NCBI GenBank assembly: GCA_965202585.1 | Contig: OZ241830.1 | Span: 38,006,001-38,070,000, forward strand | Direction: 5' to 3' | Length of the DNA stretch: 64,000 nt | DNA from: Thalia democratica | Taxonomy: Eukaryota | Shown: positions 12,101 to 58,733 of the stretch, in pieces | Layout of the letters: each line of letters opens with the position of its first letter | Numbering within the stretch: the stretch's first letter is position 1 | Program-made: the position numbers and the translations under genes | Notes under the pieces: model-generated | What the model saw: only the letters and a program-made list of their open reading frames with translations | Databases searched by the model: none | Told to the model about the DNA's origin: nothing

Positions 12101-13727
12101 AAAAAAAAATATAGAAAAAAAGCTCTTTTATTGGTTTTAGATTATGATTTATATTTTGTGCTTTACTTTTAGGTTGACTAACGACAAAAAAGTTTTAAAA
12201 GAATCCACTACTGAATTTACTAATTTACACTTGTGATAATAACAAACTGCTTTCAATATAATCTTGGTGAATAATTTGGAACTAAATACAGTTTTTATTA
12301 AATATGCATTATTAATTCTTGACTGCTAGTTTTAATTCAGTTAGCTTGAAAATTTAAATATTACTCCAGTAATATCAACATTTTACTAACTTGTAAAATT
12401 TACTAATGTAGCGAAACTTTAAATAAGTAAGCATGTTGCTAAATTAATAAACAGATTTTCAAAAGTTTTATTTATTAAATTTTTAATGAGAAACATTATA
12501 ATAAAATAAAGTATTTTATTAATGTTCAAAACACACCAAGTCAAAGTTTACAAACAAGAACTAGTGAAACAACTTAATAAAAAATGCATTCTTAAATCAA
12601 ATATGTATTTATTGCTATCATACTGTTTTTTAATTTTTATTTATTAGTTAAGATAAATTTTATATAATTTAAGATTTTATAAATATTAAAGTTTCATAAG
12701 AAATTAGTAGTTTTAAACAAGTACGGTTACTATAAAATATATTTTGTGTACTTTATATGTTATTTTGTTGTGGAGTTTAATGAATAATTTGTTTAATGTT
12801 ATTTTAAAAGTATAGTAAAACGTATAGTAAAACAATAATTTAATAAAAGTCTTCTTAAGCTATTACATAATACTAATTTTATTTAAAACAAACATTGTAC
12901 TAAATATTTTAAAATTAATTTAAACAGTATTTCTCATAACTATGTTGTTTAAAAATAATAACTGTAAGCACGTATGGAAAATTCACATCAAACAACTCAT
13001 GAGTCTTAACACGTTTTTATGACGTTTAAAAAAACTAAACATAAAAAATTTTATTAATAAACAAAGTTTACTATACAACACAGTGATTTTGAAGATTTTA
13101 TGCAATGTATGTTTATTTTCAGTTGAAATAAGTTGATTAGTATAATAATTAAAAAAAAAATTAAAACATAATATTACAGTTTAGTTTCGAGATAGTTTTG
13201 CATTTTGTTCAAATAAAAGTTTTCTTTGATCAACTAGATTTAATAAGTTTTACAATATATGCTTTCTTCTCAAAATAAAACAAATCAATTTATGGTTCTA
13301 GTAACAAACTCTTGTAAACAATTCTTATACATCACACTCAGGTTAAAAACTATTAGGTTAATACTTATGTTAACAAAAAATATATTTCAACTTATGAATT
13401 TTACAAAACATTATAATAATTTGTTAAAGTATGTAAAAAAAATTTCACAAACTAAAACTAAACTAAACACCACGCCTCAAAACAAAACAAGTACTCATTA
13501 AGGGACTCGTGAAGATAATGGACAAGGGCACGTCGCTGCTGGCCAGCTTCATATCTGGACCGGTCCTGCTGACCATGCACCACAGATCGAGCCTGCCGCC
13601 CTTCAGGCACCTGTCCGTGCCCCACAGGACCGACGCGCACTACCTTCCTCTCTTGTACCTGTCCACGCTGTACTGCGTCGCCGTCATCTCTTTCAGCATC
13701 GTTCTCACCGCCGTCAACTTGGCTTGA
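3181..13727 (+). CDS. 14-exon amino-acid transporter (APC superfamily, Aa_trans/Trp-Tyr permease-like), 517 aa
   Basis: Exons 3181-3226, 3693-3808, 5092-5219, 5579-5761, 6312-6377, 6802-6925, 7321-7434, 8252-8361, 9354-9461, 9683-9725, 9843-9957, 11115-11220, 11794-11863, 13503-13727. All introns are GT..AG, phases are consistent, total 1554 nt ending in TGA. TM1 motif FFVTIATVLGAGILGLP, then TYALAGGEALAQLF, about 11 hydrophobic segments, C-terminus QPKGLVKIMDKGTSLL..LTAVNLA. Confidence 0.88.
4589..4815 (+). mobile_element. Degenerate hAT-like MITE (CAGGGTTTCC family)
   Basis: Begins caaggtttcc and ends with aaaacagtcttataaaac, resembling the right end of the 46822-47129 copy. No TSD recognised. 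Confidence 0.35.
7536..7840. mobile_element. Degenerate hAT-like MITE (CAGGGTTGCCA family)
   Basis: Clear right terminus tggcaaccctg at 7830-7840, degenerate left end tagagttgag, and internal cctggaa motifs shared with 21789-22140. Confidence 0.5.
8744..9204. mobile_element. Short non-autonomous Mutator/Foldback-like element in a transporter intron
   Basis: GGG..CCC termini. Imperfect TIRs (gggtaggagtcaaatatgcacgaagggaca vs reverse complement gggaacgggtcaaatatgcaagaagaca). Perfect 9-bp TSD gtttttact at 8735-8743 and 9205-9213. Confidence 0.85.
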
Positions 13728-16700
13728 AGTTTATTTTTAAATATTTAAGTAATTTTGATGCTAAAATTTTAAGTTTGAATTAATCGTACTAACTGCTTGG
13801 CTTTTAATCTAATTGTTATTTGTTTAGTTTGTAGTTTTATCAGTATTTAGCTTAAGACTGGATAATTATAACTTTTACAAAATTTTTAGTAAATAAAGGT
13901 GTTTATTTTAATTAGTTTATAGATTTTTTAATGCAGTTTTAATATCATTTTAAAGTAGACATAAAACATATTTTAAGTAGACATTTTTAGAAATCTCTTC
14001 AACACAAATACTTAAACTTTGTAATCAAAATTTACTCAAAGTTTTAATTTTACAGATCTTAAACTTTACTTCAATGTAGCATTTAATAACTTTTGTTTTG
14101 ATCTTTAAAGAAATATTCAGCATAGTTAAAAATTCTAATAACCGTTTGGGTTTTTTCTTGTACTTAGTATCACCTAAACTGCCTAGCTTTCTACAGTTTG
14201 TTTTGTCCTGAACATAAGTGTCTTAAACTTTTTTGATTCGTGTCTTAAATTTCATTCCAGTTTTAAGTTGTTGCTTTTAATAGCTATTATTTGATTGGTC
14301 AAAGTGCATTTCTAAAACTTGTTTTGGACATACTTAAAAAATCATGACTTTTTGTCTTATTATGTTTATTAATATGCTGTATTTAAACTGATTTAACCTG
14401 CTTAATCTTAGTAATCTGCATATATGTTGGTTTAACTTTAGAACTAAAGTTTTGAACCTTTAGATTTCATGGTAAGTTTTTGATCAGTAATAAAAGTTTC
14501 ATTCATTTTTGCAGCAAATCGAACTTAAGATAATGAAGTTTAAAAATCAGCCTTTGTTTACAATATTGTGACACAAAGCTCAAATTAATATTTTAATCTT
14601 CAATTGTGTGCCTATTTATTTTATTGTTTTATGTTTTGCACTCTTTAGTATGATAATATCGTTTTAATAATAATAAAGTCATAAATAGTTACCCGTTTGT
14701 TTACTTTTATCATGGTTTCAAGATGTTGTAAGTACAATAAAACATATAAAACGTTTTAAAATAAATAACTTTATTCAAGAACTAGTTATGTGTTTTTATA
14801 CTCTTAAAACTAACTTCTGTATATTACAACTGCTTATCTAAAAAAGAAATTTCGCAATCGTAAATGTTTCATAACTATATAGAAATCGTAGAAAATTTAC
14901 TACATTCACAAAGTCCTTGTTAACTTTAATGTAAAGTTTCAGATTCTTAGCATTACAAGTATAAGTTCGACATTTATTGTATGTAAACAAAAATATTTTC
15001 ACATAAAATGTAAGCTAATGTTTGTATTATTTAACAATTTACAACCGTGTTTTTTAAAATGACAGTTTTTTTTTTTTTGACTATAAGTTAGTTTTTATTT
15101 TATACATTTCTTGAGTTTTTTTTTCTTTCAAACTAAGAAGCATTTACCAAACCTACCCGTTCGATTAGTTGTATAATTCTGAAAGAAATGAGTTTCAAAG
15201 CTAAATAATGATAATGGTTATCGAACTTTTTTAGTGTCCTGTTTAAAAAGTTGAGTGTGCTGTATTCAACGGAACACAAAAGTGCATTTAGTTTGATGCT
15301 AAGATTTTAATTTTAGTTTCGACGCTTTTAAGTACACTTTTATGCGTACAACCACGATTTTATCTATTACTTCTACTTCTAAAAAAATTAAAAAAAAAAG
15401 TGTAAATCTTTCAAAAAAAAGTTATAAGAAAAGTATAAATGATAATTTTTAATAAATTTAATTAGTTCTTACTTAAGATATGTCATCTTAAAAAAATATT
15501 GACTGTATAAAGCTCTTATACAATTTTTACTCTTAGTGGTACTAAAATTAATAAAAAATAGCTAAAAATTAATTAATACTTACAGTTTATTATATGCTTT
15601 TATTTTTACAAAACAAATCAAGAAATCGTAACTACTAGAGGAGAAACAATGCACTTATTCATTCTTTATACTTATAATTTATGTGCGGTATTAGTTAGTA
15701 AAGATGATTATTTATTAAGTAAAGCATTTTTAAGTTTAAAAAGTAAATTTTTTAAACTCATCATACTCTTTTAAATCTAGTAATTTTCTTTCACCATTAT
15801 TTCTAACACTCAGCTTACACAGTAGACCCACAATTGGTGTTAAGAATTATTAAATTTTTCTTTGAAAGTTAGTGACCCGAAAGCCTATTTTCTAGCGCAT
15901 GTAGACCTTAAAATCAAGTTAAAAGTTTCCGTTTGCAACAAAGTTTATGCCAGTTGGCGCAAGGTAATTTAGGTGTTTGTACATTGATAAGCTTTTTATT
16001 TCAAAAAAAAACCAACTGTCTTTTAGATATTACTTTCACTTATTTATTTATAGTGTAAAAGAGAAATTTTAAAGTTTCGTTTAAGAAGTTTGTCCTAGTA
16101 ATTAGTTTGTTTTCATTTGAGGTTTTTCTCAAAAAAAAAGTAATTGTTATTTTATTTATAAAAGTTTTAATACTTTAGTTCTTTTATTGTAAACTTTTAT
16201 CGTTGATTCGCTTAAGAATAGTTTCAATTGTTTATCTCATAAATTTTAACAATAATCGATATTGATATTTCAGCACTTGGTTAACTATAAATTTTAAATT
16301 GTTACCTAATTTTTATTTTATGAATACTTTTTAGATTTTAATACACTTTCAGTTTATTCTTACTAAGATTTCGCGTTGAAAAGTCTTAGTCAAAATATCT
16401 TTACAACAACTTTTTATTATAATATTTGGTTTGTTAAATGCTTTAAAACAGTTATAAAACAATTTTCACATGACTCAAATATAATATCCTTTAGTTTTTT
16501 TAGTCACCGTATTCATTAAAAATACTCTAGATAGCTTTTTTTTTTTATTTCAGTAATTAGCTTTGGTAGAAGTTATTTTTGAATATAAAAATTTTATGTA
16601 TATCATCTACTAAATATTTACAAGCTGTTCCAACGCAAAAAATATTAAATCGCCTTATTTGAATTTTTAGTTAAACTAATTTTATCAGTATAAAAAAAAC

Positions 16701-17089
16701 ATAAAACTAAGTTATTTAAAAAACTACTACTTTAAGTATGATAAATTTTGTTCGAACACGAACTTTTTGCCTAGTATGAAAAGATTAATTATGTATAATT
16801 TTGAACTTTATTAATATAATTTTTTTTACTATTAGATATACTGATCATATAAAAAGTTTCGAATCCAATGTTGCTTATAATAAAAATCTTATGATAACTT
16901 TTCAGTATAAACTAAAGTTTTATTTGTAGCTTCATTTTATTTAGTTTATAATTACCATATATTAAACTAATGACTCTTACAAAGTTGCTTTTTTTCTAAA
17001 CTTTAACATTTTAAGTTCAACTTTTTTACGTTAATTAAATTCTACCCAGCCTGCCTGTATTTTAAAGTATATCAAAAAAGCTGTAAAAT

Positions 17090-18985
17090 ATGTCTGATTG
17101 GGAAAAATTGGGCGTACTGTTTGAAAAAGATTTAATAGTTTGGATGATCTTTCGAATATTTTTCTACCTGTTCTGGCTATTTCCTGCTCTCAAAGCATTT
17201 CGGAAAAACTTGCACTCTCAGATGTTCTATTATTTAGGTGCCGCAGTTTTAAACATTGTAAGTAAATTGTTTGATTTTTATTCTTTATTCTGTTAACACA
17301 CGTGGATTTTGTTACTTAGAGTATTTACTTTATTATTTTACAACATTATACGGTCAAAAAAGATTTAAACGCTGTAACATAAATATATTTAAACGACCAG
17401 ATTAGTATATTATTTTTTTTAATTACAATGCATTACTTCAGATCCTTTCCTCACTTAAAATTGTTTTATACGTTGTTTCAATAACTGATGAAAAAGGAAT
17501 GTCGGAGTCTTTTAGCATTGTTAGACACTACTCTTTTATTCTATTTCTTGCAAGGTATTCTATAGGCTTAGCAATTGCTACTTCAATTTTAAGACTGACA
17601 TCTTTGAAGTCGTGGATGGTGTTAGTTTTAATATTTTATTTTATTAAAAGATACAATTTTAAATAATTTTTTTTAGTTGTTTACCTCTTTAAACTGCAAC
17701 ATTTTTATTTAGGTTTAAAAATTAACATTGAAAAATGTAGTTTTTTTATCTAAAAATATACTTATACCAGTTCTAATTGAATAACTTAAAGATTAATTTA
17801 AGTGTTTTAAAAATAGAAATGTATAACTGAAAAATTAGAACAATTAACAAAATTTCTACTTGGATTTTAACTTAAAACTTAATTAAAGGATCAAAAAAAA
17901 CTTTTAACTGCTTGATAGTGTTATTTTTATTTAAATCTAAACTAATCTCAAAGTGTATATGAATTTTCAGATCAATATTTTCGAATATGTTCAGTGTGCT
18001 GAATGTTTGTGTTTTGTTCGGTATGCATCCAGAAGATATCACTTTTATAGGAATTCCTGTTGGCACCGCAGTTTTACTGTGTTTTTGTAACTATGTGAGA
18101 TTTTAGCGTTTTTTGTGTTCTATTTCACTTTATTTTTTAACTACTTGTTTATTTTAATATTAACAATTATTTGTTACTTTAAAATATATAACTAAAGTTT
18201 TAAACCAATATGGTTGTATAAATTAAAATAGTTTAGCTTTTTTTCACTTGGATTTAACTAAGAAGAACCTAGATGTTCTTAAGTATCAGAAATTCTAAGA
18301 TTCCAATTGTACATTCAATAGGTTCTGTCTATGAGCTTAACAAGAAAGTTGCCAATGTCTTTCAGAAAATTTAAAATTTACGTCACGCCCAGTCTCAACC
18401 TTGGAATTCTCGCGCTGATAGCAAAAGTATCGCTGAATGAACAGTTAGTTTTATTTGTAAATAAAATTCATTAACTCGTAACTTTATAACTAATAACTTA
18501 AACTAGTAGCATCGTTTTGGCTCCGCTATCATTTAAAAAACACTAGACTGCGCTTCAACACTTATCGAAACAATCTGCGAACGGTTTAAAAACCAAACGC
18601 GCGTCACAGTCTAGTACTTTGTAACCTGACACTAGTTTTAAGAATATGGTCTTCTTTAGTTTTAAATAATTTTATTTTTACTGAAATATTTTAGCATCTA
18701 AAATTAGAATGAATACTGCGTTTATATACTTTAAGTAGACTTCTTTCATTTATTTTTTAGTAACCTCACAAGCTTACAATTAAATTCAACAGCGTCGGAG
18801 AAATGGTTTTCTTCTTCGTAACGGCGGTGATGCTGCTCTTCCAACTGCAAGCGATGAGGGACGGAAGCACGAACAAGCAGTACAACTTCGATGCGGCAGC
18901 TTTAGCGTACAACCCGATCGAGTCTGTTCCTTCCATTGCGCCTTGCTGCACGTGCTTCTGCAACGTGCTCGATCTCTTCATATGA
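17090..18985 (+). CDS. MYMK: 5-exon Myomaker (TMEM8C)/TMEM8-like multi-pass membrane protein, 261 aa, highly diverged
   Basis: Exons 17090-17257, 17442-17620, 17971-18094, 18322-18443, 18793-18985; phases 0,2,0,2; 786 nt. Colinear blocks with vertebrate MYMK (recalled from memory): LFWLFPALKAFRKNLHSQMFYYL ~ LAFLPTVSIAAKRRFHMEAMVYL; IPVGTAVLL ~ GPIGTAILI; YVTPSLNLGILALIAK ~ QIGPGLCFGALALMLR; C-terminal PCCTCFC ~ LCCACV. An in-frame stop lies upstream of the ATG, so there is no TMEM8A/B-type ectodomain. The gene model is firmer than the orthology. Confidence 0.7.
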
Positions 18986-28000: not shown

Positions 28001-29051
28001 TAGCTTGGTGTAAAAATCTATTATCAATTAGCAAACTATTGTAAAAAAATCCATTTCGAAGCTGTAGATTTGGTTTAAATAATGTGAGAGAATAAGAAAA
28101 AGTAAGTGTGAGAGAGAATCTTGTACTATTGAAATGTTTGTGGTGAGTCAGAAAGAACTTTACATTTTTTATCTTACAAAAGAGCGAATACAGATAGAAG
28201 ATATATGAAAAGATAAATTTCAGAATAGATGAACCTCAAAGTAAGGTAACATGAAGAATAACTTTTGTTTTAAATCAAATTGACTTTCTGAGTTGAATGT
28301 TTTAAGATTAAATTATGTGGTTGACAAATATACAAAAATAAAAAACTTTTGAAACAGTGATAATAATCTCATTTCCTGAAGTTTTATCAAGAAAATTAGA
28401 ATCTATTAAATCAGAAAACATAACACAATTAGACAAATAGCTTGCAACAAAAGTAAAATTGAAAAACTCAATAATATAAACATTTTTTTTAAGAATAATA
28501 TAAACAAATTTTATTTGTAAATTAAAACTTGTTTTAAAGATTTTATAAATGCTTAGAAAGTTAAAGATTTTATTTTTCAAGATTTATATAAACAATTTTT
28601 AGTTTTTTTATTGTATTTTAAAACTTTATTTTTTAATAAAAACTGGTTTTAAAGATTTTATAAATGCTTACCTTAGTTAAAGTTTTTATTGCAGTTTTTA
28701 GCAAAGTTAAAAGATTTAAAATGTACATTGTGGCCACACACTCAAAGTATTCTGGATAACTCTAGGATATTTAGAGTTTTATTTTTGAACTCAGGCTGAC
28801 TCAGTATAGTTTTTTTTACTATGAAAAACTAAGGACATTTTGGATTTGTTAATAATGTCATAGCAGATGTTTTTCTAGATTTGAATGGGATTTTGCTAGC
28901 TAGTTTTAATAAATTTTAATTTTATAACCAATTTTGTAAAAACAAACATTGATAAATTTTAAAAGTTAGTTTTATTTCAAAAAATAAGAAGAACAATTCA
29001 TAAATAAAATCCTGGAATTGGTGTTGGTCACAGGGTAGAGCTGTTGTTAAT

Positions 29052-31073
29052 GGGTGGGTGTCACTTTTGCACGAGGGGAAGTTTTTGCACGGCAACTCTT
29101 TTGCACGAGCGTCACTTTTGCACGAGGGGACACTTTTGCACGGAGACTCTTTTGCACGAGCGTCACTTTTGCACGAGTGGACACTTTTGCACGACGACAC
29201 TTTTGCACGAGAGGACACTTTTGCACGGCGACTCTTTTGCACGAGCGTCACTTTTGCACGAGTGGACACTTTTGCACGACGACACTTTTGCACGAAGGGA
29301 CACTTTTGCACGGCGACTCTTTTGCACGAAGGGTCACTTTTGCACGAGGTGACACTTTTTCATGGCTTTACTTTTGCACGAGGAGACACTTTTGCACGGC
29401 AACATTTTTTCACGATGACAATTTTTACGGCAGCATTGTGCCACAACGTCACATTTATACGATGAAATTTTTGCACAGCGACATTTTGGCACGATGACTT
29501 TTTCGCACGGAAAATCAATTTTGCATGCAGGCCGATTAAAAGTTTTTTAGCTACTACCAAGTCTGTAACATAAAAAGAAACTGAAAACTAAAATTTTATA
29601 ACATACTTTTATTAAAAGCAAAAAATGAAAGATCTAAAATCTTAAACAGTAAAACTTAATGTTAGAAACAAACTAACGAAACTATAAAATAAAATTATTT
29701 GTAAAAGATTCATACTAGGGACAAAAAAGTTAATTTATTTAGAAACTAGGATAAAAAATACTTTAAGTGTATTTAAGTTGTTCTAATTTATTTTGAATTT
29801 TAATATATTAGTCAACAACTATGCCTTTTTATATATTTTACTATACTGTTACAAGCTTATTGTTCATATGATGAACCTAGGCATCGAAACCTAGACCACT
29901 TAAACTTGAAGACACATAAAGAAAAAATAAAATAACACATACAGTTTATCTATTAAAACAAAGATAAAAACATAATTTGATATAAAATTTATAGGTTAAC
30001 ATAAAAAGCAAAATTTTAAGCACAAACTTATATTTATTTACGCTTTGATATAGAAGGATCAACATCAAGTACTTAAATGCATTGACTAACAACAGAAATA
30101 AAAACCTAACGCTCCAAGGACATTAACGTTAGGCTCTCATTGGCTTATTTCATGATCATGGAATGCTGGTGTAAGCATCTATTGATACTTTTGACGACAA
30201 TAAGTTCAAACTTCCAAATGTTACTCTCTCATTGGCTTATCATGATTATGCAACATTATTGTAATGAAATAGTCTAAGTTTAAATCATGAAAAATGGGCT
30301 ATTTTATGGCTTTTTTTATTCTCACGCTAAATTAAAAAATAAAAATAAACATCAGGTAAAATCTGAAATACCTTTACACTTAATAAACTAACTAATCTTT
30401 TTTTAATTTAACAATTGTTTGAAATAAAAATAAATTTAAAATATTTTTTTAACAGCTATACAATGCTAATAATAACTTCAAGAGAAAATAAGTAAAAATA
30501 AAACTCTAAACTCTTGTTTTAAAGCCTTACTAAATTAAGTTTACCTTTCTGTTTAAAAAGTAACAAAATTCATACTATTTTAATTTAATGTATTTAGATT
30601 AATTTTATTTAAAATTAAAAATATGTATTCAACTAGTTTATTTAGATGAAGCTAATAAATATAATTTAATGAATTGTGGTACGTTATTATATTGTTCTTT
30701 GTAAAAGTTCAAATAAAAACTTTACATTAAAATTTTATCAAAAAACTTCCAAATTTTAAATTTAGTTTAAAAGCGAACATTATTTAAACTTAAAAAAAAA
30801 AATAATTTAAAATAAAATGTCGCCGTGCAAAAGTGTCTCCTCGTGCAAAAGTATCACCTCGTGCAAAAGTGTCCCCTCATGTAAAAGAATCGCCGTGCAA
30901 AAACTTCCCCTCGTGCAAAAGTGATCCTTCGTGCAAAAGTGTCCCCTCGTGCTAAAGTGACGCTGCGTGCAAAAGAGTCCCTTCGTGCTAAAGTGATGCT
31001 CATGCAAAAGAGTCGCCTTGCAAAAGTGTCCCCTCGTGCAAAAGTGACGCTCGTGCAAAGGTGACTCGTTCCC
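29052..31073. mobile_element. Foldback/Mutator-like element, 2022 bp, with long modular inverted arms
   Basis: Left arm 29052-~29530 is tandem ttttgcacg-cored units of 16-18 bp. Right arm ~30817-31073 is the reverse complement. GGG..CCC termini. Perfect 9-bp TSD gttgttaat (29043-29051 and 31074-31082). About 1.3 kb AT-rich loop with no transposase. Confidence 0.9.
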
Positions 31074-31547
31074 GTTGTTAATACCTATTTTACTTGTATT
31101 GTTATATTATTTGTTTACAATGAGTTTGTTTTCTATGCATATTGTTTTATTATATGAAGATTTTTTCAGAGTTTTTGGTTTTATTCCTAACTTTCAAAGG
31201 TTTTTCATTATCTCTGTTTTTTCATCTTTATATTAACAATTTTCAAGTAGTTTACAAAATTACAGAATATTAGTTGGTACATTTGTATTTTCTAGTTAGC
31301 TTTACATTTTGAAAATTGTTTTTGAGTTTTATTTGTATTACTACTGTAAACTTGGTACACTATGTGTGGATTTTAACAAATTTAGTTGTTTCACAGATTT
31401 TTAAAACTAAGTTTAAAAGTTAAGTTTTCTAAGGTTAAAATTATAATAATATCATTTGAAAGTAAAACCACCCACTTGATATCATTAACACTCAAAGCTA
31501 TTAACAAAGTCAATCAATCTGAAGTTCAGTTTGTTACAATGAGTCCA

Positions 31548-31625: not shown

Positions 31626-31761
31626 AATCGAAGTTATTAAGATATAATTTTGAAAAACTTATTTAAATATCTATAAAAATATACAAATACAACAATACTT
31701 TTGTTAAAATTTTATTTAAAAGGACAACTTAAAAAATAGGAGGTTAAATATTATACTTTCT

Positions 31762-33014
31762 TTAATCTAACAACGTCAGTAATGAACTACTTGAATCATA
31801 TCCCAGTCGTTTCAGCGCTCTCTTAAACAATGCGTAGTACTCTTCGTAATCAGGTTTCTCACTGAAATGCAGTCTTCTCACTTCTTTCAGAAAAATTTCC
31901 AGTTCTCTGAACGTGCCTCGACAAACTTCTTCAACGGGTCCTCTTTTGCTATCAGCGACTTTTCTTATGAGTCTCGAATCAAGCTCACCCTTGTCATAAC
32001 TGGCAATGATCTCCTCCCAGGGCAGCTGGCCAGTACGGAGCTTTATGAGGACGTATGCGAGCGACTCAAGATCGTCTCTTCTGCTCGTAGTGTAACCTGT
32101 AAATAATTACGTTAATTTTAGGATGTTAAAAAATCATTACATTCAGTGTGTTTTATGGAACACTTTCTTATTAAACGTTTTGTGTTAAACCACTTCTCAA
32201 AACTCAATTAAAAACTTTGTTATAAAAGAAAAACAATTTTTCGAACCGAGTATGTTGTCAGCAGAGCTGTACCTCCTTGTGCCCAGGATTCCCCTGTGGC
32301 GCTGCCTGGTCACGTGACAACCGTCCCTTTTGTAGGCCGTGGCCATGCCGAAGTCGATGAGGTACAAGGTGTCGGGGTGGTCCGAACCCAGCATCAGGTT
32401 GTCGGGTTTAAGGTCGTTGTGGAGGATGCGGCAGCTGTGGATGAACTTCAACCTTCTTATTACCTGCATGCCCACCATCAATGTTGCTGCCACTGAAAAG
32501 TTTCGTCTTCTGTGGTAAGACGAGAGGTCCTTTCCGAGTCTCTCCATTATGAAGCTGTACGATCCGTCGTGATAAAAACTGCAAGCGATGATATAAATAG
32601 TTAAGATTGGGAAAATAGGACATTTTAAGTTAATGTGCTTTTTATGGACTTGGGTCATTCGTTAAAAGTATTCAACATTCCTTTAAATGCATTTAAATTA
32701 ACTGTTTATAACACAGATAATAACAAAATTAAAAATTAATTCACTTAGCTCACAACAAGTTTGAGAAAAACCTAAGCAAAAATATAATTTTACCTGGGTC
32801 CGACCTTCGGAATGCCTATTGCGTCAGATTGGTAATTGAAATGTGTCAGATATTTGTACTCGCGCTTAATGTTTCCATCATCTTTTTGGTGTAAAGTTTT
32901 CATCACGCAGTCTTCCCTATCGTATTCTGCATCGTACACACATCCTTGACCCCCAGTTCCAATCTTGTTGTATAAGATTAACTTTCTTTCGTCAAATTTC
33001 ATTTTTGCTTTCAT
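31762..33014 (-). CDS. 3-exon casein kinase 1-group Ser/Thr kinase, 295 aa
   Basis: Exons 33014-32794, 32578-32247, 32096-31762 (888 nt, TAA stop). Motifs IGTGGQG, VMK, REY, HNDLKPDN, LIDFG, GTRRYSS, SRRDDLESLAYVL, LPW, EKPDYEEY. The start could instead be the ATG at 33002. Confidence 0.9.
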
Positions 33015-34408
33015 ACTTATTAGTGTTTTATTTCTATCTGTATAAAAATATCGTTGTTTGAATTACAAAAAAAAGTGCTCAAAACATTTGTTCAAAAGAC
33101 TCAGTGCACGAAAAAACCTTTTGTTATCGCGTCGCGCACTACTCGGATACCTTTTAACGTCTTGTCCAGTATTAAGCTTCAAGTAACAGAATATTTAAAG
33201 AAATTTAGTTCCTAAGAGAATTCATAAGTTTACAAAAAAAAAAAACTTTTAACCATATTGATTACATTTGCCATAGTTAAACTTAACTTAGCTTTAATCT
33301 TTCATGTGATTTTACTTTTAAATTACCGCGTGCTTACCCTTGCCAAATTAAGCCCAATAAACAAACAATAACTATTGAAGCAAAAGATTTAAAATAATTT
33401 ATTTATAAAGACTTGTTTTAAAATCTTATAACATACAAATCCTTTAGAATGACAAAATACTAACCGAATTATTATAAAAAACTAATTTTATAATTTTGCA
33501 CGGTGATGATTATTAGCGTTTTAGTTTAGTAAAGTCGTCACTATTTCTAGCTTCTAGGTAGCTAGATTACAGGCGCCTGCCAAAGCGCCTAGCAAATTGT
33601 TTAAACAAATGCTACTTTTTTTTGTTAATGAGATCTGTTTTGTTGTTTATTTGTGTTTTTTACAGCCACTTCCATTTCTATGACATAACTTGCACTTTAA
33701 CACTTTAATTTATTTTTAACTCGTTTTAGTTTTTTTTAACATTTTTTACTCAAAGCCGTTATAATAAACTAAGTTCCATTAAATTTAGCTGTTTATAAGT
33801 TTGTAATTTTTTAAGTCTTCATTTATCAAGTCTAGACACTTGTATATCTAACTTTGAGAAAAAAACCTTTACAACCGCTAGATTTACACTACCCACAAGT
33901 TTTGGTAGGTGTGATATAAATGTTTTTATAAAACTAATATTAAAACGTCTTGTTATTAAATAAAAGAAAAACTAAATGATACTTATAGAACTGTTAAGTT
34001 TATAAAAAAGTAGTATTTTTGTAAATCCTTTAACTGAACAAATAAAACATCTTAATTTTTTCTTTATCGTTAAGTTTAAATCGTTATAAATCTTACCTAA
34101 CTAACCAAGTAATACAAATTTGTATAAGTTAAGTTAATTAAAAAGAAGTTATTTGAAAGTTATGGAACATAAGGTATCTCATTAGTATTGTAGTTAAAAT
34201 AAAAATAATAAAGTATAAAATAGTTTGTTTTAAACTTAAGATTTTTTGTTTGTACAAGAAAATGCACCAGGTTACAATTTTATATTTTACTTTGTTTCTA
34301 CTATGCTATTTAGCACATGCAGTACTTAAAATTAAAAATTAAACTTTTACTTGTTATTAGCTACAAATCGAAATGCTTATTGCTCACCTTATAAACATCA
34401 GTCTAAAT

Positions 34409-43765: not shown

Positions 43766-46120
43766 ATGAGTGAAGTGAAGCAGAGGCCAAAAGTAGTGAT
43801 ATTAGGAGCAGGAATCAGCGGGCTTTCATGTGCAGTAAATTTAATAGACCATTGTGACGTCACCATACTTGAAGCACGCAACAGAATCGGTGGCAGAATT
43901 AACACCCGCCGTTTTGAAGGTAAAAAATAAAACAAAAGTTGAAAGTTATTTGCAAACTAACAATTTATTTAAGTTGATAGTGTTTTTACAAAGTAGTTTT
44001 TTTATTAATTTATAAAAAAAATTAAAAAAATGTTTTTATTATATATTTAAGACAACTATGTGTATATATACAATATCAAATATCATTACATACTTTATTG
44101 TATTCGACAGCCAACGAAATAGTTATAAAAGTTTACATGTGAAAAATTTACAAACTATTTGACCTTTAATTTTAATGGTCTTCAGACAACTTCTTGTATG
44201 AAGACGGGGCCCAATGGGTAAATTGTGGAAAAGATGACGATTTAAAGTTATTTGCTGATAAACACATGATAGGTACTTCTCCGTACCAAACGTAAATTGT
44301 TTTTATTAATATGATTATTATTGGTTCCTGTTTGATGATGTATTATCACTGTGCTTTTAACAGAAAAAAGAGGTTTCTGTTTGAAAGCCATGAAGCAAAA
44401 GGTGACGAATATGAACGTCTTGATGAGGTGTTACAGAGTTTTGATTCTAAAGTGGAAGATGCTACAAAAGGAGCGAACATCAATAACTCGAACAATTTGA
44501 TGGCATATATCAACGATAATTGGTCGTATAGTAAGAATGAGGAATTTTCACCATTGTACAATTCTATGTTACAGTTCCAAAAAGTGAAAGAAGGTTGCAG
44601 CAATTTGGAAACTGTTAATATTAAAGATTACGACAACTTTAATAGCGACAAAGGATTGTTAGTTGAACGTAGATTATAAATTTATTCCCAATGACACTGT
44701 TTTATCAAACACAAATTAGTTTTGACTTACACTGCTAAACTGTTAATACAAAGTGAGCAATAACTGAATAGAAAAAAAAAAGTTTTAAAAGCTATAAAAG
44801 AGTGCAAAAGTCTATTAACTTCTGTTTAGTATTGAACCGATATTTTTTGAATAGTAAATAAATTTATGCTTCTATGCGCACAGGGCTACGACTTTTCAAA
44901 CAGTTGATGGAGGAACAGACAGCATTTTAAACAAAATCATTGAACTTTTACCCGAAAACACTGTGAAATGCAGCAAAAAAGTCACAAACGTCAACTGGGG
45001 TGGAGACAACGTCCGCACAACAGTTAAAGACTTGGAGTCTGGTGCGACGAGCTTCTTTGATGCTGATTTCGTTGTTTCCACTCTGCCGCTCGGAGTTTTG
45101 AAAGATGTTCATGAGAAGATGTTTGAGCCGCGTTTGCCAGCGGAAAAATCAGATGCAATCAAAAGGTAGATATAGTGAAATGTCAAATATAAAGCATATA
45201 CTGATTGTGTTTTTTTCTGATAGAGTTGGATTTGGAAGCGTAGCTACGGTAACTCTTAGGTTTAAATGTGAAGACATAATTGGAAGTGAAGGTAAAACCA
45301 TGCTGTACCTTCTAAGAAAAGATAAGTTCAAGTATGGAAACTACTCAGTGATTGTTTTCAGGTCTCCTGGAAACAATGAACAATTTATGACGGTATTTTG
45401 TACTTTTAATTTTTTTAAGTAAAAAATAGTTAAATTATGTTTTTCATCACTAAAACAACATTTGAAAACATAATTTAGATTTGGTTAGTCGGAAAAGAAG
45501 CTGAGTTAGCAGAAAAAACAGAAGATGATATTTTAATTGAAGAGTTTGGGGCAGATCTCAAAAGATGTTAGTTATATTTACCTTACTTTTACTTTTTGAA
45601 ATAAAACAGCCTAGATCTCAGTATAGATACTAATACATTACATATACACAAGTAGACAGCCCACAAAAACTGCTTGAAAAAAAACTTAACGTTTAATTGA
45701 GAAATTAACAAAAACTTATAGAACTTTGTTTAGAAAACTGTATTTAAGGTACTGAGGTTGAAGTTAAAATTTTCAAAACACTTACCTATATTTTTCTACT
45801 CAAATTAAAAAAAAAATATAAAAAACAAACTTTTAACAGTCATGCCGTCTTTACCTAACCCATTTGCCGCTTACGTGACCAAGTTCTCGCAAGATGAGTA
45901 CGCAAAAGGGGCTTTCCCTTACATAAACTGCCAGAGTACAATCAAGGATATAGCAAGCCTCGCGGACCCGGTGTACCACACCACAGCTGACGGTGACCGC
46001 CGGCCGAGAATTTTGTTTGCTGGCGATTCCACGAGCGAGGCGCAGTACCCTCTTGTGAACGGGGCGTTTGAAAGCGGCGTAAGAGAAGCTAAAAGATTGA
46101 TAAAAATAATTTCAAACTAG
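43766..46120 (+). CDS. 7-exon FAD-dependent amine oxidase (polyamine/spermine oxidase-like), 457 aa
   Basis: Exons 43766-43919, 44186-44291, 44364-44657, 44884-45165, 45224-45392, 45479-45566, 45840-46120 (1374 nt). Motifs VVILGAGISGLSCA, LEARNRIGGRI, GAQW, VVSTLPLGVLK, DEYAKGAF, ILFAGDST..VNGAFESGVREA. Confidence 0.9.
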
Positions 46121-54058: not shown

Positions 54059-54538
54059 TTAATTGGTGAAATACCCCGAATAAGGCTGGGCCTTCTTTCG
54101 CGCCACCTCTTCGTACTTTTGGCGGTCTTTTCTGAACAAAATGGCCGCTTCCTCATTAACCACCTCGGTCATGTCAGGGCTGATGAGCAGGTTGCCAATT
54201 CTCCTGAACACGTCACTGATGGTGAACCTGTCCGACCAACCGTCGCCCAGCATGTTCATACCCATTTCGCCCTTTCGGTCTGCCGTCTCGGCCACGATGT
54301 TGGGGTGGAAGATGCTGGTTGCCATGGTAACCAGGGGCGGGTTGTTCGGGTAGTCGGTGGGAAAGCTGACCCTGATGAGGAACTTTAGTCCCGCGTAAGG
54401 GGAATTTTCCGGCCCCATGACGTGCATTTCGTACCGGTAGAGGTTCATTTCAGACAAGTTTCTCAAGTTGAGGAGTTGGAGGGTCCGGAGGTGCTTCATC
54501 TCAGCCCTGATCCTCTTATCAGTTACCAAAGTTGACAT
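54059..54538 (-). CDS. Intronless E2 ubiquitin-conjugating-fold protein lacking the catalytic Cys, 159 aa
   Basis: Motifs GPENSPY, FPTDYPNNPP, IFHPNI, W at GDGWS, VNEEAA..YEEVAR. The region that is GxICLDIL in canonical E2s reads GEMGMNML. Confidence 0.88.
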   Translation of the reverse strand: MSTLVTDKRIRAEMKHLRTLQLLNLRNLSEMNLYRYEMHVMGPENSPYAGLKFLIRVSFPTDYPNNPPLVTMATSIFHPNIVAETADRKGEMGMNMLGDGWSDRFTISDVFRRIGNLLISPDMTEVVNEEAAILFRKDRQKYEEVARKKAQPYSGYFTN

Positions 54539-58226: not shown

Positions 58227-58733
58227 TCATTTATGAAATTTTTTACTTAGTTTCTCTTTGGCGCGCTTTTCATACATTTCCCGGTCATTTGTGTACAAAA
58301 TGGCCGCTTGCAGGTTCACCACGAGACCAGGGTCCAAATCGGGGTTCCGCATCACCGACTCCAGCCTCTAAAATACGTCACTTATGTTCAACCCCTTCTC
58401 CCACCCGGACCCCAGATAATCAAGCCCGATCTTGCCGTGGGGGGCGTCCTCCACACAGGGGTCGTCCGACAAAATGTTGGGGTGGAATATGTACGTGTTC
58501 ATGCACAGCAATGGCGGGTTGCTAGGGTAGTCGATGGGAAAGTGGACTCTGATCAAGTACTTCTTCTCAAAGTAGGGACTTCCCTCGGGTCCGGTGACCG
58601 CGACCTCCCACCAGAAGAGGTTGACTTCCGACTTGATCTTGGTTTTGAGGATGCCGCGAGAGGCGAGATTTTTCATCTCTTTTCTTATCCTTACAGCGGT
58701 ACTTTCCGTGATGTTCTCAGTTGGAAACGACAT
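58227..58733 (-). pseudogene. Second intronless Cys-less E2 paralogue with an in-frame TAG at codon 122 (nonsense allele, readthrough or base error)
   Basis: GPEGSPY, FPIDYPSNPP, IFHPNI, GKIGLDYL, then SDVF*RLESVMRNPDLDPGLVVNLQAAILYTNDREMYEKRAKEKLSKKFHK*. TAG at 58370-58368; the frame continues to TGA at 58229-58227. Confidence 0.75.

Follow-up and report, generated by a model that had tools for sequence, protein, structure and literature searches.

The window analysed here is a 64,000-nucleotide (nt) stretch of the genome of the salp Thalia democratica (NCBI GenBank assembly GCA_965202585.1, contig OZ241830.1, positions 38,006,001 to 38,070,000 of the forward strand), and all coordinates given below are counted from its first letter. 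A gene with five exons was found on the plus strand at 17090-18985, encoding a membrane protein of 261 amino acids (aa) that is related to Myomaker (MYMK or TMEM8C in vertebrates, MymK in tunicates), which enables muscle cells to fuse. The gene is spliced, transcribed and under constraint, and its homology to the TMEM8/Myomaker lineage was detected with a profile of full-length vertebrate MYMK proteins. We propose, with a probability of about 0.6, a lineage-specific and neofunctionalised paralogue within this lineage, whose product would be a metal-free, tail-palmitoylated and lipid-binding protein.

Gene structure and protein layout

The exon-intron structure was determined from spliced contigs of a marine metatranscriptome, which came from two RNA libraries of one whole-community sample. 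Four RNA joints were observed, 17257|17442, 17620|17971, 18094|18322 and 18443|18793, and every intron has GT..AG ends. DNA contigs of two organisms span 17090-18985 without these joints. The spliced coding sequence (CDS) is 789 nt long including the stop codon, and its introns are in phases 0, 2, 0 and 2, located after codon 56, in codon 116, after codon 157 and in codon 198, respectively. An earlier reading of this DNA from its letters alone (the sequence-only reading) had proposed a phase-consistent, five-exon, 261-aa protein with multiple transmembrane (TM) segments, and the RNA joints confirmed both its coordinates and its splicing. Two other placements of intron 4, at 18427/18773 and 18457/18773, were ruled out by the joint 18443|18793. 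The exons stand out in base composition as five GC-richer blocks, with 33-50% GC against 18-30% in the spacers and about 24% in the window.

The 5' untranslated region is covered by RNA at 17074-17089, from the start of contig X1 onwards, and it contains an in-frame TAA at 17084-17086, two codons 5' of the ATG at 17090. This stop leaves no room for an upstream coding exon, and therefore the protein cannot carry an ectodomain encoded there, as the sequence-only reading had held. Exon 1 (17090-17257, codons 1-56) encodes a short outer N-terminus, TM1, which begins at about residue 14, an inner loop of basic residues with the sequence KAFRKN and TM2 as far as its middle, and it ends at a phase-0 intron whose joint was seen in both X1 and a second RNA contig, X2. 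The rest of TM2, with Ser/Leu in place of His48 and Cys50 of MYMK, a longer outer loop that lacks Cys59, and TM3 are encoded by exon 2 (17442-17620, codons 57-116, the last split in phase 2), which is joined to exon 3 at 17620|17971. Exon 3 (17971-18094, codons 116-157) contains TM4, an outer loop and TM5 with the motif P-V-G-T-A-V-L (18056-18076), and a phase-0 intron follows Y157 at the joint 18094|18322. Exon 4 (18322-18443, codons 158-198, the last split in phase 2) contains an inner loop that is strongly basic and TM6, in which the motif P-S-x-x-L-G-x-L-A-L (18388-18414) is located, and its joint to exon 5 was again present in X1 and X2. The codon of H198 is split by intron 4, with its first two bases in exon 4. 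Exon 5 (18793-18985, codons 198-261 and the TGA stop) completes H198 and encodes TM7 and an inner tail of 43 aa. In this tail the cysteine cluster C-C-T-C-F-C is located at codons 249-254 (18944-18961), and it is a candidate palmitoylation site. The cluster had been described before as the end of the protein (PCCTCFC); it is present, but seven further residues, NVLDLFI, follow it.

About seven TM segments were found by hydropathy. On the sequence, 12 Lys and Arg residues were counted in the tail and the loops predicted as inner, and 5 outside, and therefore, by the positive-inside rule, an N-out/C-in topology is predicted. RNA coverage reaches 18842, so that neither run covers the final ~140 nt of the CDS, where the cysteine cluster is encoded. 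This end is open in frame, and a DNA contig of a sister species that covers 18731-18975 showed one difference in 245 nt. Exon 5 has 50% GC, compared with 33-39% in exons 1-4, so the cytoplasmic tail is encoded by DNA that is unusually GC-rich for this genome. In contig X1, 27 nt (9 codons, in frame) are missing within 17971-18028, the first part of exon 3 that encodes TM4, and a second contig of the same sample breaks at 18029. This gap could be an indel polymorphism, a difference between sister species or an isoform.

Homology to Myomaker

A search seed of 75 aa for the C-terminus of mouse MYMK was used for retrieval only. It led to database fragments named 'protein myomaker' with the domain PF12036, and the alignment of these fragments led to full-length MYMK proteins from mammals to sharks. 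All MYMK sequences analysed here are database entries that bear this name and carry PF12036. A profile was built from 17 full-length vertebrate MYMK proteins and compared by hmmsearch with the spliced 261-aa protein.

The full-length protein scored 19.0 bits with the vertebrate MYMK profile (P 4.8e-8 for a single comparison), with profile positions 50-186 aligned to residues 73-209. As controls, the protein was shuffled 9000 times: 3000 times within each helix and loop, 3000 times in windows of 8 residues and 3000 times globally. None of the 9000 shuffled sequences reached 12 bits; the means were near -2.5 and the maximum was 11.7 bits. Likewise, 3000 pseudo-genes made from hydrophobic stop-free stretches of the same AT-rich window all stayed below 12 bits, with a maximum of 10.7. 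The 559 single stop-free stretches of the window scored at most 5.3 bits, and the reversed protein sequence scored -3 bits. Comparison by hhalign of the full-length protein with MYMK gave a P of 1e-5 in global and 2.7e-5 in local mode. These results support the Myomaker-like character that had been claimed for the gene.

The similarity was also observed in single parts of the protein. Exons 2, 3 and 4 were each colinear with the MYMK profile when taken alone (P 0.013, 5.5e-4 and 0.015, respectively; exon 2 with profile positions 52-84), and exon 3 alone gave a P of 5e-4 in hhalign. In ungapped scans of the helices along the profile, the colinear offset ranked first for TM1-TM2 (offset 11; 7.5 bits for exon 1), TM3 (offset 23), TM5, TM6 and the cysteine tail. 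The strongest placement was that of TM5, with 15.9 bits at offset 24 and 2.9 bits for the next best, followed by TM6 with 11.9 bits at the same offset. TM5 and TM6 are the best-kept helices of a colinear alignment. From these comparisons, about 90 well-aligned residues with weak colinear support elsewhere, we consider the homology of the protein to the TMEM8/Myomaker family to be established at the sequence level.

The introns were compared with those of MYMK. Introns 1, 3 and 4 of MYMK follow codons 45, 133 and 172 and are in phase 0, whereas intron 2 splits codon 84 in phase 1. All four have the same position and phase in the herring and elephant shark loci, and fragments of mammalian genomic open reading frames (ORFs) confirmed introns 3 and 4. 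Since they are identical in a teleost and a chimaera, this gene structure is ancestral to jawed vertebrates. The sequence-only reading had given phase-0 introns of the vertebrate gene after ..FFVA and ..KW, and both proved real in herring and elephant shark, at codon 45 (FFVA/FFTV) and codon 133. It had also aligned them with introns 1 and 3 of the salp gene. For intron 3 this was exact, because the intron after Y157 matches the MYMK intron after W133 in position and phase. For intron 1 the match is either exact or one codon off: the intron after codon 56, of the same phase, corresponds to MYMK codon 45 at offset 11 and to codon 46 at offset 10, a difference of one residue between the segment scans. 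An exact match of one intron out of four would arise by chance with a probability of a few percent, which is supporting evidence for the homology and not decisive.

Several observations weigh against the assignment to the Myomaker lineage. In the ungapped scans, TM4 and TM7 did not place the colinear offset first. The signal comes mainly from the ~90 residues of TM4-TM6, and the score fell to noise after removal of TM5-TM6. Introns 2 and 4 do not match those of MYMK, codon 116 being about 8 codons from the site in codon 84 and codon 198 being 5 nt from the junction 172|173. Single exon pieces had no match in Pfam (E<=10), DUF3522 included, and phmmer searches with the five exon pieces against the PDB sequences, among which are mouse and Ciona Myomaker, found no Myomaker chain and only spurious leucine-rich repeat matches to the tail in exon 5. 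Finally, a motif scan of the 1.5 kb upstream of the gene found no MRF-type E-box and no EBF site. The same scan, which covered MRF, EBF, MEF2 and CArG motifs, showed no CArG box and nothing notable. In Ciona, activity of the Mymk promoter requires MRF and Ebf sites that lie next to each other (PMC11441980), so this absence argues weakly against the same regulation as in Ciona.

Larger databases were searched piecewise as well. With exon 2, phmmer against 1.84 billion protein representatives returned only one chance match to a bacterial repeat protein; exon 5 had no match among 5.8 billion clusters; exons 5 and 2 had none among JGI metagenome contigs; and the ESM Atlas returned only noise with exons 5, 3 and 1. 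Pieces of 40-60 residues were blank in the large databases because the signal lies mostly in TM4-TM6. Within the 64-kb window, tblastn of the model found no paralogue of the gene, and no other stop-free segment exceeded 5.3 bits with the MYMK profile.

These blank searches, together with an identity of only ~20% and the failure of TM4 and TM7 to favour the colinear offset, are what would be expected of an unrelated, lineage-restricted protein with seven TM segments whose likeness to Myomaker arose by chance between hydrophobic sequences. Against this stand a P of about 5e-8 with a single family specified in advance, controls of real composition that scored far lower, three exons that are independently colinear and one intron identical in position and phase. 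We therefore regard chance similarity as very improbable.

Selection on the gene

The DNA of the sister species (organism B) was compared with the gene. In 786 coding nt, 9 substitutions and one insertion of 3 nt were found (~1%), whereas the introns and the 3' flank differed by 4-9%. Exon 3 was identical, and the single difference in exon 5 is synonymous. Four changes in the helix core were synonymous and one was non-synonymous, and the amino acid changes clustered at the outer N-terminal tip. The lower divergence of the coding sequence indicates that the gene is under purifying selection and is not decaying. A decaying former copy of MymK, an expressed pseudogene that has as yet no stop codon, would fit the loss of residues that are essential elsewhere and the 27-nt in-frame gap in exon 3 of one RNA contig. 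The ORF, on the other hand, is intact with canonical sites at all splice junctions, and the slower coding divergence and the excess of synonymous changes in the core are not those of a pseudogene, so that we give this explanation hardly any credence.

Conserved and lost residues

Aligned with a rodent MYMK at 186 positions, the protein is 20% identical to it, and it keeps 18 of the 84 mapped positions that are invariant in vertebrate MYMK. The motifs retained are P-x-G-T-A-V-L in TM5, P...G-x-L-A-L in TM6 and C-C-x-C in the tail. In the last of these, C249-C250-T251-C252 aligns with C217-C218-x-C220 of MYMK, and so the C-terminal cysteine cluster is kept, as had been noticed from the letters. 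Since the C-terminal cysteines of MYMK are palmitoylated (PMC13644828), those of the salp protein are by analogy probably palmitoylated too.

The zinc ligands of MYMK fared differently. The position of His48 in TM2 is occupied by Ser59 at offset 11 or by Leu58 at offset 10. In the best colinear alignment of TM7 (offset 18, 4.4 bits), the motif H-S-F-Y-H pairs with H-V-G-E-M, which places Met202 at the position of His184 and suggests that His180 may be retained as H198. Cys50 and Cys59 have no counterpart, and the first cysteine of the protein is residue 129. Only four histidines are present in the whole protein (H42, H85, H135 and H198). The sequence-only reading had stated that the CREST histidines were lost. 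This is true of His48 and His184; its pairing of the TM7 motif with GEMVF was off by two residues, and with HVGEM in its place H198 may persist. Its conclusion that no intact triad is left is unaffected. At most one histidine is thus left of the H3-S-D motif of CREST proteins, in which one His is in TM2 and two are in TM7, and at most one of the five residues His48, His180, His184, Cys50 and Cys59 is present, namely His180 as H198. An alternative metal site could be imagined from H85, H135 and H198, which are all on the outer side; it had no support beyond the topology.

These five residues are reported to be invariant in all known MymK of vertebrates and tunicates (Zhang 2022, PMC10848958). 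In thaliaceans in particular, MymK orthologues with 26-30% identity to the human protein were described in which His48, His180, His184, Cys50 and Cys59 are perfectly conserved (Zhang et al. 2022, PMC10848958), and mutating the conserved histidines abolishes fusion in human cells (PMC10848958). The gene could nevertheless be the only MymK orthologue of the animal, evolving very fast and still fusing its multinucleate body-wall muscle, in which case the zinc/His site and the Cys50-Cys59 pair would be dispensable there. Its MymK architecture (no ectodomain, a CC-x-C tail, five exons and the shared intron 3), the purifying selection on it, the multinucleate muscle bands of salps (PMC10848958) and the absence of a second MymK-like exon in the 64-kb window all agree with such a role. 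It is at odds with the reported thaliacean MymK, which conserves the five His and Cys residues whose mutation cripples human MymK (PMC10848958), with a score of only 19 bits against 156 for Ciona MymK, and with the lack of MRF and EBF motifs in the 1.5 kb upstream. On balance we find a sole orthologue unlikely, though it deserves to be taken seriously. The paralogue is favoured by the reported presence in thaliaceans of a canonical MymK that has kept all five residues.

Comparison with related proteins

The salp protein resembles vertebrate MYMK/TMEM8C, of which mouse structures are available (8T03, 8T04, 8T06 and 8T07), in its seven TM segments with the N-terminus predicted outside and the C-terminus inside, the absence of an ectodomain, the five coding exons, the small size (221 aa in MYMK and 261 aa here) and the cytoplasmic CC-x-C tail. 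It differs in being only ~20% identical and in lacking His48, His184, Cys50 and Cys59. Compared with MYMK, about 12 residues are added in its first outer loop and 6 are missing from its TM6-TM7 loop, and its tail is longer by 22 residues, with 9 residues after CCTC.

Ciona Myomaker (8T05) is also from a tunicate and has the same architecture, and the sequence P-S-x-x-L-G at the start of TM6 was seen by eye to be common to both proteins. However, Ciona Myomaker keeps all three histidines and scored 156 bits with the vertebrate profile, compared with 19 bits for the salp protein, which has therefore diverged much further than is normal for a tunicate MymK. The salp protein is no closer to Ciona MymK than to the vertebrate proteins, with ~19% identity in the TM4-TM6 block by our own count on the printed alignment.

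The remaining family members were compared by description. TMEM8A/PGAP6, TMEM8B and the tunicate Tmem8-related protein share the DUF3522 seven-helix core with the salp protein (PMC13562381). They carry a large ectodomain with an EGF-like domain as well as the His triad (PMC10848958, PMC13562381), and the salp protein has neither. An independent origin from a tunicate Tmem8-related (TMEM8A/B-like) gene, which would have lost its exons for the ectodomain and the EGF domain and come to resemble the short form of MymK by convergence, is compatible with the distance of about 20% identity from both vertebrate and Ciona MymK, as for an older split, and DUF3522 is common to all TMEM8 members (PMC13562381). 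Features of MymK itself, however, are the CC-x-C tail and a protein that starts directly at TM1, and in view of them such an origin appears improbable. More distantly, the seven-helix core is shared through the TMEM8 branch with the CREST superfamily (PAQR/AdipoR, alkaline ceramidases, PGAP3 and SIDT). All CREST members carry the H3-S-D motif according to a 2026 review (PMC13562381), whereas the salp protein has at most one of its histidines, and therefore a zinc hydrolase site cannot form in the known way. Because it fails the residue definitions of both MymK and CREST proteins, we do not call it a Myomaker; on its sequence it appears to belong with Myomaker by descent and architecture.

Proposed function

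In Myomaker, zinc is bound on the outer side, a lipid pocket lies between TM5 and TM6, and dimerisation is needed (PMC13562381). Its three zinc-binding histidines were inherited from lipid hydrolases, and no hydrolase activity has been found (PMC13644828). On its sequence, the salp protein descends from the TMEM8/Myomaker (DUF3522, CREST) lineage and has the short architecture of the Myomaker type. Of the three histidines that bind zinc it has lost His48 and His184, and the Cys50-Cys59 disulfide is gone as well. We propose that it exists as a lineage-specific, neofunctionalised paralogue beside the canonical MymK reported for thaliaceans. A role as a metal-free, acylated and lipid-engaging membrane protein is suggested because the helices of the TM5-TM6 pocket and the cysteine tail are the best-kept parts. 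The protein may act in membrane remodelling alone, or it may associate with canonical MymK, a protein that has to dimerise, as its partner or modulator.

That a zinc-less Myomaker still drives the fusion of myoblasts in salp muscle, or helps to drive it, seems to us doubtful. If it does, the His triad and the Cys50-Cys59 disulfide would not be intrinsically required for membrane fusion of the Myomaker type, and the TM5-TM6 lipid pocket with an acylated tail would be the minimal working core. The biochemical mechanism of Myomaker is still unsolved, and the salp gene, which separates the functions of the scaffold and lipid pocket from those of the metal site in nature, offers a natural test of what the zinc site is for. 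For tunicate MymK a rescue assay is already in use, and it can be applied directly to the salp protein. A diversification of the MymK lineage in thaliaceans, whose muscles are obligately multinucleate, is also suggested. A literature search found no paper on a Myomaker-like paralogue or on a TMEM8 member without the histidines.

Other features of the window

Further genes were identified in the window, namely a kinase, an amine oxidase and two E2-like genes, and they do not bear on the Myomaker-like gene. Three GC-richer blocks at 31750-33220 on the minus strand belong to a multi-exon protein kinase gene, the middle one matching Pkinase with an E value of 5e-15. On the plus strand, 45842-46117 is the C-terminal exon of a flavin amine oxidase (Amino_oxidase, E 8e-11), and the ORFs upstream of it at 44311 and 45105 had no Pfam match. 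Two intronless ORFs on the minus strand, at 54059-54538 and 58368-58733, matched the ubiquitin-conjugating enzyme domain UQ_con with E values of 6e-28 and 3e-17, respectively; no exact product of either was present in the public gene index.

A GC island (48% GC) at 13440-13766, 3.3 kb upstream of the Myomaker-like gene, has long open frames on both strands, one of which closes with a hydrophobic stretch just before its stop codon, and it is possibly the last exon of an upstream gene. The region 28900-31130 is a repeat region with overlapping open frames on both strands, consisting of short units rich in His, Phe, Cys, Thr and Arg.

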